Shown here piece after piece: positions 1-49,292 of a stretch of DNA of 64,000 bases. Within the stretch, counting starts at the first letter, position 1; every line of letters begins with the position of its first letter. A program made the position numbers and the translations under genes. Under the pieces are notes generated by a model. The model was not told the origin of the DNA. It searched no databases and was given only the letters and a program-made list of their open reading frames with translations. The DNA is taken from NCBI GenBank assembly GCA_004431415.1, contig QPMI01000194.1, positions 1 through 64,000 on the forward strand. The letters run 5' to 3'. The stretch comes from Cyanophora paradoxa CCMP329 (taxonomy: Eukaryota; Plantae; Glaucophyta).

Positions 1-420
1 CCCCCCCCCCCCCCCCCCCCCCGGCCTATGTCGCGGGCGGCCGAATGGATTTGTCATTCAGCACCACATTACAGTTTACAGAAACTGTCTCACCACAACG
101 CCTACCATGAATCCTAGGATTGGCACTGAGGCACTTACATCTTTGGAAAATAGGAACCGAAGCTTTGAGTGCTGGAGGAAGCAGTGAAGCTAGAACTACA
201 GTAGAGAACAACAGATGACAGGGATAAAGAGGGAGAGGAAGTGGGTGGGCAGAACACCGTGCTACTGTTGCGGGCGGCCGACTTGGTGCGCTGGCTCGCC
301 AACTCTCGGAAAGGCACACTTTGACGACGCAGGGGCGGGTTGCAGGGCGAAGGGAGGGGACGCTGGGCGCCTAGTGACGAGGGCAATTGGCGCCGAGCCG
401 CGGGGGAAAGGAGGCGGGGC

Positions 421-1471: not shown

Positions 1472-2024
1472 GTCAAAACCGGTCGGACCAGTCCAGAAGC
1501 GGCCAGACAGCGCGTTAGAAACGCTAGATGGTCACGGCAAAGACTGAGGGGAGGCTGCAGAAGACCGGCGCACCATGTGAATTTGTTCGAAGGGAGGGAT
1601 ACAACGTTCAGCGCCTGCGTTCGGGCCGTGCAGCTCGGTGAGCGATGCAGTGATCATGAGCGCCGCGCGCGCGCGCTAATGCTGGCACGCACGCCGAGCA
1701 CTAGCGCTTGCACTCTGCAGGATTCGATCGCTGAGCAGGATGTCGTGCTCCGGCCCAGAGTCGGAGTCCCTCTTGTGCGCGGTCGTGCTGCCTTACATCG
1801 CGCCCGCACTAGGGAACTTGACCGCGTGAGTTCTCCGGATCCCTCATGGTTATGCCGTCAATAAAGTATCCACGCAGGACGCTGATTTTTCTTTCCGTAC
1901 GTGCGGATCTCTTTGAGATAGCTCGTTCAGCTCGCCACTCACCACCCCCCCGCCACCCTCGCCGCCGCCGCCGACGCTGTCTACGCTGAACGCAGCCAAC
2001 GAAGGAGATGATCAGAATCAGGAA

Positions 2025-2679
2025 CGCGGGGCACTCGTAATCATGCCGGAGTTCCGCACCAGCCAGATGGTCAGCGGGCTCTGTCGGCGCGCCCCCACCG
2101 GGAGTTCCGCTCACTTTCCCCTGCAGGTCGCCCGCAAGGGGCGGGCGATGCTCCCGTGGGTGGCGCGTCAGGCCCTCGACTGCCGCCACTACGAGTACGC
2201 TGGTCTTGTGTTCGGCTCCCTCTGCCGCGCGGTCTTATGCTTATCTCGCGCAGGTTCCGGACGCTCATGCAGCACGCCGTCCGGCGGCACCCCAAGGACG
2301 AGGACCCGCCGTGCACGCTCCAGTTCGTCTGCGAGGCCTGGACCTCGAAGACGTGCGGGGTGTGCGGCAAGATCAACTACGGGCTCGGCTCGAAGAGGGT
2401 CTTCGAGTGCCGCCCCGGGTGCGGCTTCCGGGCGGACCGCGACGGCGGCGCCGCGCGGTGCGTGTTGTGTCTATACACGTCTATACACAATCGCTGCCCC
2501 CCCCCCCGCCTAGTCCCAACACGGCCTAGCCACGGCGTAATTTTCCGTCTAGGGCCGGCTCGCCCTCCCAGCGCCGCCCGATCGCAATCGTAATCGTACT
2601 GATCGCACAGACCTCTCGCAGGGGCATCCTGATCCGCTACGGCACGGGCGTGGACGCGAAGCGCCTGCTCAGCTCGTAG
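2025..2679 (+). pseudogene. Fanzor2-like (TnpB-derived) RuvC nuclease, C-terminal 124 aa, three spliceosomal introns
   Basis: Exons 2025-2069, 2127-2194, 2254-2457, 2622-2679 splice (all GT-AG) to RGALVIMPEFRTSQMVARKGRAMLPWVARQALDCRHYEFRTLMQHAVRRH..VCEAWTSKTCGVCG..FECRPGCGFRADRDGGAARGILIRY..LLSS*. Motifs: P-x-F-x-TS-x-M, E-A-[WY]-TSKTC, Zn ribbon, DRD..AR.I. No start codon or RuvC-I. Confidence 0.9.
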
Positions 2680-2822
2680 CTACAGCTAGCTAGGCTCGGC
2701 TCCGATTCCCCTTTTCTCCATCAGGGCACCAGTCCCTGCGGGTTACGCTCTCACCCAAACAGCACGGGTACAGTTAAAGCGCTGTGGTAGGAGGTCCGGC
2801 GCGCCCGTAGCGTAAAAAGAGA
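2025..2822 (+). mobile_element. 5'-truncated Fanzor-carrying insertion flanked by a 14-bp direct repeat (ATCAGAATCAGGAA at 2011-2024 and 2823-2836)
   Basis: Exact 14-bp duplication of SWEET exon sequence on both sides; the insert holds a Fanzor C-terminus plus 143 nt of non-coding 3' sequence. Confidence 0.85.
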
Positions 2823-2840
2823 ATCAGAATCAGGAAAGAC
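2680..2840 (+). ncRNA. Putative Fanzor omegaRNA scaffold with flank-derived guide
   Basis: Lies between the Fanzor stop and the element right end. Pairings CAGGG2722/CCCTG2734, GGGT2740/ACCC2753, TTACGCT2743/AGCGTAA2809, ACGGG2764/CCCGT2804, ACAG2770/CTGT2782. Confidence 0.5.
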
Positions 2841-3266
2841 AGGTGTATCCTTTCATCGTGAACAAGTAACTGAAAACGACTTTTTCTATCTGACTTCCCT
2901 GAAAACGGATTAGCTGCTTGTCGTGGGTCATCTACGGATTTCTCTTGAAGGACTACTTCGTGTTTGCGTGTAACTGGCTTGGGTACCTTCTTGGGGTGGC
3001 TTGGACATTCACGGTGTACCGTTATGCATCCGATCGGCAGCGGACAACTTCAGAGATCGTGTGCTGCTCCTTTTTCCTTGCCTTGATCCAAGCATCCAGC
3101 TGTGCTACAGATCCTCATCGGAGGCCATGCAATGCTCTTCATGGGCGCCTGCTTTGGCACGTTTGCAATGACACCTGCTCTGTTTGCACCCACCCTCACG
3201 TCCTTGCAGCATTCATCACTGAAATGGAAACGGGCTCTGCACGCGCCATCTGCGGCTCATTGTGTG

Positions 3267-3391
3267 CTAATCGCAATCAGAGACGTCCAACCTTAGCTTT
3301 CGCCCAACCCCTAATCATAATCGCAATCATCAGAGACGTCCAACCTTAGCTTCCGCCCAACCCCTAATCGTAATCGCAATCAAAGACGTCC
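3267..3391 (+). repeat. ~50-bp minisatellite (about 2.5 units) inside the SWEET gene span
   Basis: Unit ~CCCCTAATCGTAATCGCAATCAAAGACGTCCAACCTTAGCTTCCGCCCAA. Confidence 0.9.
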
Positions 3392-4002
3392 TCACAGGCG
3401 GCTTGCAGGGCAATTGTTGTGCTCGTGTCATTCTATGCATCGCCCCTCTCGACACTCTACACTGTCTGCATGGAGCGCAACTCCATATACTTCTTCTGGC
3501 CGCTGTCGTTGACATCATTTCTAAACGGAAGTTTCTGGTGCCGAGCTTTGCTCGCCCCCACGGAATTGTGCACTTAGTGTACGGGCTGTATCTTCGAGAT
3601 CCCTTCATCTGTAAGGCCACCCGCCTTGTGTCTCTATCGACGACTTATACCCACTAGGGGCGCCGAACTTTACAGGCGCCATCACAGGAATGCTGCAGCT
3701 CATCCTTCGCCTTGTTTTCAAAGCACGCCCAGCGGGCAGCCCCCGTCCTGGTTAATCCCGCTCTTGCGTGTTCTCGCTGCCGACGTTAATTTTTTTGCAG
3801 GAAAGGAGAATGTGGACGCAGTTGTCTAGATCTTTCTCACATATGGTGCAAAAGACACTGCAAAAGAGAATGGAGGCAGCCCTCCTTCTCCCTCTGCAAT
3901 GCTTTCTATGCATGTGCCTCAGGCGGCGCCTTCGTCAAGCAGCAAAACACCACAGGGGTCGACTCCAGGGGCAAGGCCAAAGGCATGCATTTGGATGCTT
4001 GA

Positions 4003-4125
4003 CCTCCGCCCCACCCCTAATCGAAATCGCAATCAAAGACGTCCAACCTTAGCTCCGCCCCACCCCTAGTCGTAATCGAAATCAAAGACGTCCAAGTTCC
4101 AACCCAAGGCCTAATCGTAATCGCA
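4003..4125 (+). repeat. Same ~50-bp minisatellite, second cluster
   Basis: CCCCTAATCGAAATCGCAATCAAAGACGTCCAACCTTAGCTCCGCCCCA repeated about 2.5 times. Confidence 0.9.
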
Positions 4126-4606
4126 GGCAAGGCCACTTGGCGGCGAGTTAGAATTCGATGATGTTCCCGACATTTAGCACCCAATTTGATGATGTGCCCG
4201 ACATCGAGCACGTCATGAGCATCATCAGTCTGCATGCATTTGATCGTTTGTGACACGTGGTGCTAGCTGTAGAACGAGCAGCACATCTGACAATGCGCTA
4301 TGCATTTGACAGTGAAGACTGAGCGCGGAGCATTTGCTACAAGTGTGGGATGTACATGTACACTGCGGTCGCCGCGTGCCGCAGTGCCACCAGCAAGTTG
4401 GCCAGCCGGGCCCTGCGTACGCGTGGCCCCCTAAAGAGAGTATGCTCAGTGAGAGATGCAGTGATCATGAGCACCACGTGCACATGCACGCTAATGTGAT
4501 CTGGCATGCACACCGCAGTAGAAAGAGCAACTGTCTTTTCGATATATTGCTGTTAAATACAATGTGTATAAATGGGCACAGTCACCAAAGCGTATAGAGC
4601 AGGCTG

Positions 4607-17138: not shown

Positions 17139-17221
17139 GAAGCTAAGGTTGGGCGTCTCTGATTGCGATTACGATTAGGGTTCGGACGACGAAGCTTAAG
17201 GTTGGACGTCTTTGACGCGAT
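17139..17221 (-). repeat. ~50-bp minisatellite, third cluster (inverted)
   Basis: Reverse complement reads CAAAGACGTCCAACCTTAAGCTTCG..CCCTAATCGTAATCGCAATCAGAGACGCCCAACCTTAGCTTCG. Confidence 0.85.
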
Positions 17222-21870: not shown

Positions 21871-23451
21871 TTGAACTGATCATGGGAAGGCTGCCCAAGA
21901 AGAACTGTCTCACCTTTCTCTCTTGCATTGCAACATGTCCTATATGTGTAAAGAGTGCTTCGAAGCATGGCACTGCGCACGTCAGGTGCATAGGGGGGAA
22001 TATAAGATCTGCATATCGTTTGCATGCGAATTACAATCGAGATTGAGTTATGTCCAACCCTGTCGACATCCAAAAAAATCGCAATCAAACTCAAAATCAA
22101 AGTCTTACTCCCGTCAAACCCCATCCAACCAAATGAAACTGGCCTTCTCCCGCCAACCCCTCAGGGCCTGTACATGTACAAGCTATACGATGATCTGCTT
22201 TGAATTCCTCCACTACCTGTGCCACTCTACCCCCAACCCGTCACGGCGTCCCCCGAGCTCGAGCTACCCCCTCCTTGCTCCCCCCCCCCTTTCAAGTTCA
22301 ACGGTTTCTCCCCGGAGTCTTTACCCCACTGGGCCATGGCCAGGCCGGCATTAGAAAGAGGCCCGAACTGGGATTTCGTCTATTGCTTTCCGTATATACG
22401 TAGCTAGATATATATATATAGGCCCAGGGCACAATTGCAATTGACTAGTACTTGAGACTTGAGATCTAGCTATATAGCTAGCTGCTAGGGACCTAGGTGC
22501 GCATACTACCCAGAAAGTTAATTGCATAACTCGGTTGGGGAGTGTGTGTTGTGGCATGGCGGGGCGAGGGGGGGAGCGCGCTACGCGCCAGCTGGCATAA
22601 TTAAAGAGGCCCTTACATAGAGCAGTTCGCAAGTGGTGGCGTCTAGCGCCGTTACCATCGATTTTCGACCACTGCGGGCGCGGGATTCGCGGCGCGGGAT
22701 CGGCAAGACAGCTACACGAGTGCTAGGGAATCGGCGCGCATAGGTCCTTTTTGCTAGCGGATCCCCGCTGCGCGCCCGCGCGCCAAGGTCCCGCGCGCCC
22801 GCTTGCGGAGGGGGGGGACAGCGATTCCGTCATGCAGTCCGCGCTGCTAGCGCTCTGGTCGCGTTATGCATGCGCGGTACAGCGCAACGATTGCGCTGTG
22901 TACCGCTTCGGGTCCTCCGCGCTGCCGCCGCCGCGCCAGCGCCGGTTTTGGGGCTGCCCAAAACCGGGGGGGACAGCGTTACGAGGCACCATGCAGCTCC
23001 AGCCACACATCGCCCGGTGTGCGAAACGCTCGAGCGCGTCGCACTCCCCAGGCGCCGCCGCTATATCTGGCGCCTCCATCTGGCCCCGCTCGCCGCCGCA
23101 GTACACGGCGACTACACGCCGCACATCGCGGCACATGTGTCGCGTGTAGTCGCCGTACTACGGTACGCGTGTACTGCACAACACACTCCCCAACCGAGTT
23201 ATGCAATTATCTTTCTAGCAGAATGCGCTCTTGTGTCCCTGATACTAGCGCTATAGCTATATAGGGGGGAGCCGAGATCTGATATCGATCGCGATGGATA
23301 CTAGTACGTACGTATATATACTGACCTGCTAGCGCTTCCCTAGCTAGCGCTATAGCTATATAGCTATAGCTATAGATCGATATCTCAATTACCGCAATGC
23401 AAGTCTTCTCTAACATGTACCGTAGTACACCGTGGCACCCTCAGCGGCCTG

Positions 23452-46628: not shown

Positions 46629-48441
46629 GTGTAGCATTTCAAGAGCTTGATGGCTTTATCGAAAAGCTATTCGGTGCTACTATTCAACAATGATATAGTG
46701 TTGTGCCTTTTTTTGATTTTAAGTGTCCAGCCTCGCCCGAACTGAAATCAAAGTCATAATCAAACCTTGCCCCACCGGTACCCCCTGCCTTGCGCCTGAA
46801 ATCAGAATTCATTCATTGAGTCAAAATCCAGCATAAATACTCGTAGCAGCCCCGTGGCAGCAGCCGTGACGGATCCGGATGTGCCATAGTGAATGAATTC
46901 GCACACACCGAGACATGTACAAATGGCTTTGGATAGAACTGTCGTGTCCATCTGTGTCGAGTCGACGTCGATCGCGAGAGATGAGCCGACAGGAACAAGC
47001 CTTTTGGACATCGGACCGGGTGGAGCTCGGAAATGGAAATAGCTTTAGCTACCCCGGGCCCGAGGATCCGGACTATGTTTAGCGCTGCAGTACAGGGGAG
47101 ATCCTACTGGAGCTCGAGGGAAGGGAGTGACTACCCGAGGGCGAAAGGGGAAGCAGAAGCCAAAAGATAAGTGGGCGGCTAAAAGAACTGCAGCTGGCCA
47201 TGGAGCGCTAGCTATATATACGTACGCGTATACGTATATACCTAGCAAGCTATAGCGAAGGCCTCTGGGAAGGCCTAGGCACCCTGTAGCCTAGTAGTCT
47301 AAACCACTATGGACATGCTGAGGTACGGCCTGTCGCATGTACCGGATATCGATGTGCCGCATGCGCAGCGTACCGGTACCAGCTAGCGCCAGCTATAGCG
47401 CTAGCGCTGGCAATATTAAAACATGCCATGCATGGCACCAGCTGCAGCCGCCCCAGTGTGATCTGTAGTGTATTCTATATATAGCTATATATTATATACC
47501 TAGTCCTGAATTTGCAGCCAACCGTTGAACGGCTCAATTTGTATATACCCCTTCATATGCCGCCCGGCGGCCTCGTCAAATCCGTTTCCCTGCGGCCACG
47601 ACCGGGATTGCCCGCCGGAACGAGTTGGAGACAACCGGGAACGGCCTCCTCTACGCGCTCGAGCTAGCGGCGAGCCCGTAGCTAGCCCGGTTCAACGGTT
47701 GCCGAGAACGGGGACATACATCGTGCATATGCAAGTCCGACGGTCCATGCACGTCGCCGGAGCGCGCCGCCGGACACCCGAAAATGAGCGCGGATGCGGT
47801 TTTCAACTCCCGGTCTTCAATTCGGGCCGCGTTCGAACCGCGGATCTAAAAAAACCCGCGGGGGGTATACGCAACGGGAGCCCACAGCTGCTCGTAAAGC
47901 GCAGTCTGCAGGTGCAGCGCACATCAGACGCAGTCGCGAGGCAGCAGCACAGTTCTGTTGCCTTTCGGGACCGGGCGCCGGTCGGGAGAGAGCGCCTTCA
48001 GGTGAATTCCTCGAGCTCTGCGCCCGCGGCTGACATCGCGCCCGCACCGCGGCTCGCAACATCGCTCACCGTTCATCCCTCCCGATCCGCTTATTCACGC
48101 GCCGCGGGCTTGCGCCGCGTTCACGGACCGCGCAGAGCTTGAACACTCCCATCGCGCGCCTCTGGCTCGCTGGCCGGCCTGGATAGACGATTGGCTCCTT
48201 GAAGCCTCAGAGGATGTACGCTATTGCTTTGATGGCTCTGCGCTGGCCGCCCTGACCGCGCTGGCCGCAGTGGGACGTCCGATTCAGGCGAACTGAAAAA
48301 GCTCGCCCTGCCTGGGGCTATCAATGCCCCCCGGACGGCAAGTGCTCACTTGAAGACTGTCTTCTTCACATCGTGCATGGTGCGCTCGCCCCGCCCGGCA
48401 GGTTCACTTGAAGTCTCACGGGTTCCTTCACAGACGGCGGA

Positions 48442-49135
48442 CCTCGCTCTTTGGGCCAGGTGAGCCGGCGGCGCGGCCGGACGGCTCTCGCAACGGTCTC
48501 TGAGATATTCACCCGCAGATGCCCTCCGTAGCGCGCGCTCGCAGCCCGCGGGGCGCCCAAGCGCATCGAGAGCTCGGGGCTCGTCCGGCGGGCCTCGCTC
48601 TTTGGGCCCGGTGAGCCGGCGGCGTGGCCGGGCGGCTCTCGCAACGGTCTCTGAGATATCCGCACGCAGATGCCCTCCGTAGCGCGCGCTCGCAGCCCGC
48701 GGGGCGCCCAAGCGCATCGAGAGCTCGGGGCTCGTCCGGCGGGCCTCGCTCTTTGGGCCAGGTGAGCCGGCGGCGCGGCCGGACGGCTCTCGCAACGGTC
48801 TCTGAGATATCCGCATGCAGATGCCCTCCGTAGCGCGCGCCCGCAGCCCGCGGGGCGCCCAAGTGCATCGAGAGCTAGGGGCTCGTCCGGCGGGCCTCGC
48901 TCTTTGGGCCAGGTGAGCCGGCGGCGCGGCCGGGCGGCTCTCGCAACGGTCTCTGAGATATCCGCTCGCAAATGCCCTCCGTAGCGCGCGCCCGCAGACC
49001 GCGGGGCGCCGAAGCGGATCGAGAGCTAGGGGCTCGTCCGGCGGGCCTCGCTCTTTGGGCCATGCATGGCCAGGTGAGCCGGCGGCGCGGCCGGGCGGCT
49101 CTCGCAACTATCTCTGATCTATCAGCGCGCAGATG
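48442..49135. repeat. 151-bp tandem satellite, about 4.5 units, followed by a ~25-bp sub-repeat to about 49220
   Basis: CCTCGCTCTTTGGGCC starts at 48442, 48593, 48744, 48895 and 49046. Confidence 0.97.
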
Positions 49136-49292
49136 CCCGCGGGGTGCAGTCCGCGAGAGCTCGGGGCTTGTGCAGTTCGCGAGAGCTCGGGGCTTGTGCA
49201 GTCCGCGAGAACTAGTGCAGGATCTGATTCCATTCCCATCGACAGCGTGAATTTGGATTCCCCCCCCCCCCCCCTTCGTAATTTCTTGCTTA

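Follow-up and report, generated by a model that had tools for sequence, protein, structure and literature searches.

Analysis of a 64-kb stretch of the Cyanophora paradoxa CCMP329 genome (contig QPMI01000194.1, positions 1 to 64,000; hereafter the window, meaning the whole 64,000 nt) revealed that positions 2025-2822 are very probably a 5′-truncated, non-functional copy of a multi-copy Fanzor2-like gene family of C. paradoxa, lodged in the first intron of a SWEET gene. The family itself is real, multi-copy, transcribed and spliced. Fanzors, eukaryotic RNA-guided nucleases described in 2023, are related to TnpB, the ancestral RNA-guided nuclease.

An intron-containing reading frame inside a SWEET intron

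Exon-by-exon translation of the forward strand showed that four exon pieces, at 2025-2069, 2127-2194, 2254-2457 and 2622-2679, form one open frame. They contribute 15, 22, 67 and 18 whole codons, which together with two split codons, GAG (Glu) across intron 2 and CGG (Arg) across intron 3, make 124 codons, and the frame closes with a TAG stop at 2677-2679. The three introns (2070-2126, 57 nt; 2195-2253, 59 nt; 2458-2621, 164 nt) all begin with GT and end with GCAG, and the third contains a short copy of an AATCG-type repeat at 2580-2602. The first surviving exon piece starts at about the point where homology to paralogs begins (~2025) and encodes the RuvC-II strand, with Pro 2046-2048 at the position of the canonical Glu. 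Exon 2 (22 codons plus two bases) is identical to residues 2-23 of a C. paradoxa gene model, P0164 (tig00000829_g4644.t1, 110 aa). Exon 3 carries the alternative catalytic Glu (2333-2335), the zinc-ribbon Cys codons (2354, 2363, 2408 and 2420) and the RuvC-III Asp (2441-2443).

P0164 corresponds exactly to M + exon 2 + E + exon 3 + R + exon 4, and it supports both intron 3 and exon 4 with its stop. The published annotation already models the locus (tig00000829_g4644) and gives it these same three introns. Each exon was searched separately, and the joined spliced form was examined only as the database proteins P0164, P0001, P0154 and P0157. Because exon 3 alone passes the cut-off of the Pfam model PF07282 and P0164 equals the exon series, the frame is not a product of chance. 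The first-pass annotation of this DNA had claimed a 124-aa frame with three GT-AG introns and a clean TAG; the exon translations, the split codons and P0164 all agree with it, and every motif that it quoted is present in the exon-by-exon translation.

The host gene encodes a SWEET/MtN3 sugar transporter, with Pfam MtN3_slv matches at 2918-3100 and 3419-3574. Its exon 1 lies at 1740-1825 on the forward strand, where RNA contigs stop at 1825 and a GT donor follows at 1826. Exon 2 spans 2843-3020, as delimited by an RNA contig covering 2840-3018 and, at its 3′ limit, by the GT at 3021-3022. Intron 1 (1826-2842, acceptor AG at 2841-2842) contains the Fanzor insert, which is 798 bp long, has the same orientation as the SWEET gene and sits 6 nt 5′ of the acceptor. 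The insertion enlarged this intron from ~205 to 1017 nt, and no other functional consequence of the inert locus is indicated.

Exact 14-mers flank the insert on both sides, the left one (2011-2024) matching the right one (2823-2836), as expected of a target-site duplication. Isolated 14-mers repeated within 2 kb are rare, numbering about five in the window once true repeat families are left out. The four other isolated exact direct repeats of this length, 0.4-2 kb apart (6058/7043, 8793/9212, 13177/15128 and 29653/31022), could be target duplications of other insertions or could have arisen by chance.

Assignment to the Fanzor2-like nucleases

Exon 3 alone scored 38.3 bits (E 1.5e-9) on PF07282 (Cas12f1-like TNB, formerly OrfB_Zn_ribbon), where the cut-off is 26.3, and NCBIfam TnpB models gave weak matches only, to the same stretch of exon 3. 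An exhaustive phmmer search of 1.8 billion representatives returned 639 proteins at E <= 0.001. Four short, near-identical proteins head the list, and the near-identical ones are C. paradoxa gene models (eukprot EP00741); the other matches are mostly 380-700 aa long, with 45-60% identity across the zinc-ribbon region.

Fanzors are recognised by a DPG motif at RuvC-I and by an alternative RuvC-II Glu that precedes the zinc finger by six residues (PMC10711439; PMC10530073), and the catalytic triad of the mimivirus nuclease ApmFz2 is D324/E467/D501 (PMC11832414). In the HMMER alignment to the ApmFz2 chain 9b0l, the Glu at 2333-2335 is the counterpart of E467, the Asp at 2441-2443 that of D501, and Pro 2046-2048 that of Gly416, which occupies the place of the canonical TnpB Glu. 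The codons 2333-2365 spell E-x6-CxxC, which places the alternative Glu six residues ahead of the first CxxC. The second zinc knuckle has the form CxxxC and is followed by a DRD motif with the RuvC-III Asp at 2441-2443.

Profile comparisons point in the same direction. The C-terminal profile found 9b0l as its best PDB chain (E 3.4e-27; next, 4e-18), and a profile of 64 full-length relatives matched 9b0l over nearly its whole length at E 4.5e-82, with TnpB chains at 1e-27 to 1e-36. No Fanzor1 chain was present at E <= 0.01 in the PDB match lists of either profile. All 64 full-length relatives contain the TNB domain, 43/64 contain OrfB_IS605 and 42/64 contain HTH_OrfB_IS605; this TnpB-like combination of HTH_OrfB_IS605, OrfB_IS605 and TNB is the architecture published for Fanzor2. 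A scan of IMG/VR yielded 225 relatives, many of them in giant-virus MAGs (GVMAG contigs), at 36-47% identity, which fits the known enrichment of Fanzor2 in giant viruses (PMC10530073).

The AF2 model of P0164 (110 aa) reached a mean pLDDT of 73, a moderate confidence. A Foldseek search with this model gave a best E of 0.013, with no match at <= 0.001, and ranks 1-19 are all Cas12f, TnpB, Fanzor2 or CasPhi chains; this outcome is consistent with a TnpB/Fanzor identity of the predicted fold but not decisive for it. Collectively, the sequence comparisons support a Fanzor2-like family, a placement relative to Fanzor1 that is read from profile scores and domain architecture. The first-pass annotation had proposed a TnpB/Fanzor protein of Fanzor2 type and a search of RuvC and zinc-ribbon profiles as the way to check it; the proposal is upheld by the PF07282 match of exon 3, the alternative Glu, the Pro at RuvC-II and the first rank of 9b0l with the family profiles.

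Extent and state of the window copy

The paralog model P0157 (tig00000342_g24202, 1087 aa) combines a RuvC-I DPG region with the same C-terminus as the window copy, and so provides the fuller copy that had been predicted to exist elsewhere in the genome. It aligns to the family profile in two blocks: residues 480-675, covering the WED strands and RuvC-I with the DPG motif, and residues 928-1077, running from RuvC-II to RuvC-III. Between the two blocks lies a low-complexity stretch of ~250 aa, which may be either an unremoved intron or a real insertion between RuvC-I and RuvC-II. Three Fanzor-family models occur on this one C. paradoxa contig, tig00000342 (P0003, P0157 and P0158; g24195, g24202 and g24215), and P0157 is the only long one among them.

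Within the 64-kb window, P0157 has a counterpart only for residues 967-1087 (~121 residues), and P0164 spans positions 394-487 of the 528 in the family profile. The copy keeps the RuvC-II strand, the alternative catalytic Glu, the zinc ribbon and RuvC-III, about the last quarter of the protein, and the RuvC-I DPG region present in the paralog is absent from it. Because WED, REC and RuvC-I, with its first catalytic Asp, are missing, the copy is predicted to be inert and incapable of cutting DNA; judged from its coding content, it is a non-functional fragment. No further Fanzor-family copies or segments were found in the 64-kb window by tblastn or blastn.

Splicing and transcription of the family

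One DNA run (X2) and three probable RNA runs (X15-X17) of C. paradoxa were mapped over 1500-4300; the RNA nature of the latter is the tool's guess, hence "probable". Contigs from all three probable RNA runs omit 2070-2126 and 2195-2253, with GT..AG ends, and the DNA run has neither joint. After 2457, one RNA contig runs into the start of a paralog exon 4 (Ser-Ile-Phe-Ile-Arg-Tyr, as in P0001), which shows use of the intron 3 donor together with a homologous acceptor. The host introns in the same data are 47-50 nt long. The introns of the Fanzor family are thus genuine spliceosomal introns of host-like type, as shown for the family. Two X16 contigs continue past 2458 with sequence unlike exon 4 of any model; they could represent an alternative downstream exon or a fusion transcript of another copy.

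The spliced contigs carry paralog variants, such as C for T at 2324 (Leu, where the window copy has Phe). They therefore derive mostly from paralogs, and splicing is shown for the family rather than for the window copy. With that scope, the short host-style introns anticipated by the first-pass annotation were recovered as joints in the probable RNA runs that are absent from the DNA run, and the junction reads that it had named as a check reveal that introns 1 and 2 are spliced out and that the donor of intron 3 is used, mostly in paralog contigs.

Compared with the host SWEET gene, the family yields spliced transcripts in abundance. Contigs spanning the 5′ junction of the insert (1996-2069) have a low depth, equal to that of the host gene, which fits passive transcription within a host intron. 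Transcription of the window copy itself probably occurs only within the host pre-mRNA.

Graded copy number and a constant 3′ end

Depth in the DNA run X2, given here as per-contig word depth and not as true copy number, is ~125 in the flank and then rises across the insert, from ~500 at 2044-2186 through ~1100 at 2300-2391, ~2200 at 2403-2479 and ~14000 at 2628-2721 to ~49000 at 2722-2815, before returning to ~120 beyond 2822. Word depth within the insert thus climbs from ~4x to ~390x of the flank toward a fixed 3′ end. Loose contig ends place the 5′ ends of other copies at 2362, 2644, 2707, 2716 and 2770; their 3′ ends all fall at 2821. Furthermore, the gene models P0002, P0003 and P0004 consist of unrelated sequence joined at differing points of exon 3, and the junction at 2362 agrees with P0003 and P0004.

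Repetition within the family peaks in the non-coding 3′ tail (2680-2822, forward strand, ~142 nt), at ~110-390x the single-copy word depth. This tail occupies the position where an omegaRNA scaffold would be expected and terminates in a short A-rich stretch, with no poly(A). It has no match in Rfam, and folding of 2680-2822 and of 2622-2842 was no better than that of shuffled sequences (z +1.5 and +0.4), a weak test that excludes nothing. No inverted repeats were found in 1800-4400.

Origin of the copy

The footprint of target-primed reverse transcription (TPRT) is evident in this family: a constant 3′ end, scattered 5′ ends, a 3′-biased depth and a 14-bp duplication, a length within the ~7-20 bp expected of TPRT. 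A copy of this kind would have been made by TPRT of an unspliced family transcript, with a LINE acting in trans through a 3′ tail common to both. The other trait of TPRT, a processed RNA with introns removed and an A-tail, is missing, as three introns are kept and the end is short and A-rich. RNA-derived retroposition is expected to remove introns, and this counts against TPRT here. Neither a reverse transcriptase nor a LINE with the same tail was seen. With all three introns still present and nothing more than a short A-rich run at the end of the tail, retroposition with introns kept is an origin that we infer at about even odds. A template read from the reverse strand was rejected: the constant end of the family is its 3′ end on the forward strand, and an opposite-strand RNA therefore cannot explain the pattern.

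A fuller version of the retroposition model seems distinctly improbable. It would make the family an intron-retaining Fanzor2-like retroposon without its own reverse transcriptase, copied by a LINE via the shared tail, and the tail might be an omegaRNA scaffold, linking guides to retroposition. If this were true, RNA-guided cleavage would be coupled to retroposition and not to DNA transposition; were the tail indeed the scaffold, several hundred tail-only copies would each set that scaffold beside a new flank and hence a new guide. Confirmation of the footprint genome-wide would establish an unusual mode of spread for a Fanzor gene.

The principal alternative to retroposition is that the copy is a fragment of a DNA transposon (IS607-like, Helitron, hAT or other) that carried the Fanzor and was left behind by abortive gap repair or internal deletion. 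The tail would then be a right end or an omegaRNA region common to non-autonomous "ghost" elements, as in Spizellomyces. Kept introns are what DNA-level copying is expected to produce, the tail sits where an omegaRNA would be encoded, Fanzors are typically carried on DNA transposons, and ghost elements that share ends are documented (PMC10432273; PMC10530073). Set against this is the exact 14-bp duplication around a truncated copy, from which it follows that truncation occurred at insertion. To our knowledge, moreover, 14 bp is unlike the fixed short duplications of DNA transposon superfamilies. The combination of many 5′ ends with one 3′ end and a graded copy number, the lack of an inverted repeat in 1800-4400, and a tail that is not unusually structured and has no Rfam match likewise argue against a DNA transposon, which we consider unlikely. 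An origin of the locus as a remnant of an integrated giant-virus genome, bearing a viral Fanzor2/TnpB, rather than in a resident nuclear transposon family, would agree with the enrichment of Fanzor2 in giant viruses (PMC10530073), with the 225 IMG/VR relatives, GVMAG contigs included, and with a mimivirus protein as the closest solved structure. However, the viral relatives are only 36-47% identical, the spliceosomal introns of the family are removed in RNA, near-identical copies are numerous in the nucleus, and the flanks are the intron of a host gene and not viral genes, all of which makes a viral remnant very improbable.

It is also highly unlikely that P0164 (110 aa) is a functional mini-protein, an expressed C-terminal piece (zinc ribbon and RuvC) that would bind the family's guide RNA or hinder the full-length nuclease. 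In favour of such a role, its frame is intact and preserves the zinc ligands along with two catalytic residues, there are 12 or more short gene models like it, the family's spliced transcripts are plentiful next to those of the host gene, and its AF2 model is of moderate confidence (pLDDT 73). An open frame is nevertheless expected in a young copy, here ~1-4% diverged, and the RuvC fold is incomplete. No promoter or transcript start of its own was seen, the RNA contigs carry paralog variants and not the Phe of the window copy at 2324, and the short models begin at arbitrary ATGs, some of them within intron 2.

Other repeats in the window

A repeat unit of ~50 nt with the core AATCGTAATCGCAATCA forms short arrays in the SWEET gene region, at 3248-3393 and 4004-4130. 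The core also occurs at 2580-2602 (in intron 3 of the Fanzor insert), at 17160-17176 on the reverse strand and at 22077-22093; its nine occurrences in the window compare with 0.06 expected. DNA depth at the arrays is 2-3x that of the flank. By eye, the N-terminus of P0002 looks like a translation of this repeat beside another truncated Fanzor copy. One DNA-run contig passes directly from 3390 to 4070, leaving out the 679 nt that lie between the two arrays, and reflects either a deletion allele from inter-array recombination or an assembly collapse.

Elsewhere, a GC-rich 151-nt unit is repeated in tandem 4.6 times at 48435-49138 (92% matches), and a 26-nt repeat comes next, at 49144-49210. Window positions 1-22 are a run of 22 C, perhaps an artefact of assembly or the end of a contig.

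Comparison with known systems

Fanzors, their rearranged active site, their introns, their nuclear adaptation and their occurrence in algae are already published. We found no paper that reports a Fanzor or TnpB from Cyanophora or the glaucophytes, and neither is named in the supplements of the Nature and NAR Fanzor surveys. The present locus adds a new lineage, the glaucophytes, to the known range of Fanzors, together with read-level support for the splicing of family introns.

With the prokaryotic TnpB of IS200/IS605 and IS607 elements (ISDra2 TnpB, 8h1j/8exa), the Cyanophora family shares its fold family and Pfam domain. Unlike TnpB, the window copy is eukaryotic and intron-containing and has no Glu at the canonical RuvC-II position; with the family profile, TnpB chains also score far below Fanzor2 (1e-27 to 1e-36 versus 4.5e-82).

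The copies resemble 5′-truncated LINE copies and non-autonomous TPRT retroposons in their variable 5′ truncation, constant 3′ end, 3′-rising copy number and 14-bp duplication. In contrast to LINE-type retroposons, they retain introns and have no long poly(A), and no reverse transcriptase was identified for them. Intron retention has been reported for Penelope-like elements.

The closest structural counterpart is ApmFz2 (L79) of Acanthamoeba polyphaga mimivirus (9b0l), the best PDB match both of the fragment's profile and of the relatives' full-length profile. Shared with ApmFz2 are the rearranged RuvC, whose alternative Glu, equivalent to E467, precedes the zinc finger by six residues; the lack of an acidic residue at the canonical RuvC-II position, which is Pro in Cyanophora and Gly416 in ApmFz2; a zinc ribbon of the TSKTC type; and the DRD motif of RuvC-III. 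After DRD, the window copy reads GGAARG where its relatives have xNAARN. The window copy differs from ApmFz2 in comprising the last quarter only and in a second zinc knuckle of CxxxC rather than CxxC. The Cyanophora gene has introns whereas ApmFz2 has none, the full-length paralog model extends to 1087 aa with its ~250-aa low-complexity insert, and around the window copy, itself truncated, no IS607-type TnpA or inverted repeats were seen.

Among algal systems, CrFNuc of Chlamydomonas reinhardtii is likewise a nuclear multi-copy TnpB homolog that has acquired host-like introns (PMC10530073). CrFNuc is a Fanzor1c on Helitron2 (PMC10530073), whereas the Cyanophora family is Fanzor2-like, belongs to a glaucophyte and bears a LINE-like footprint.
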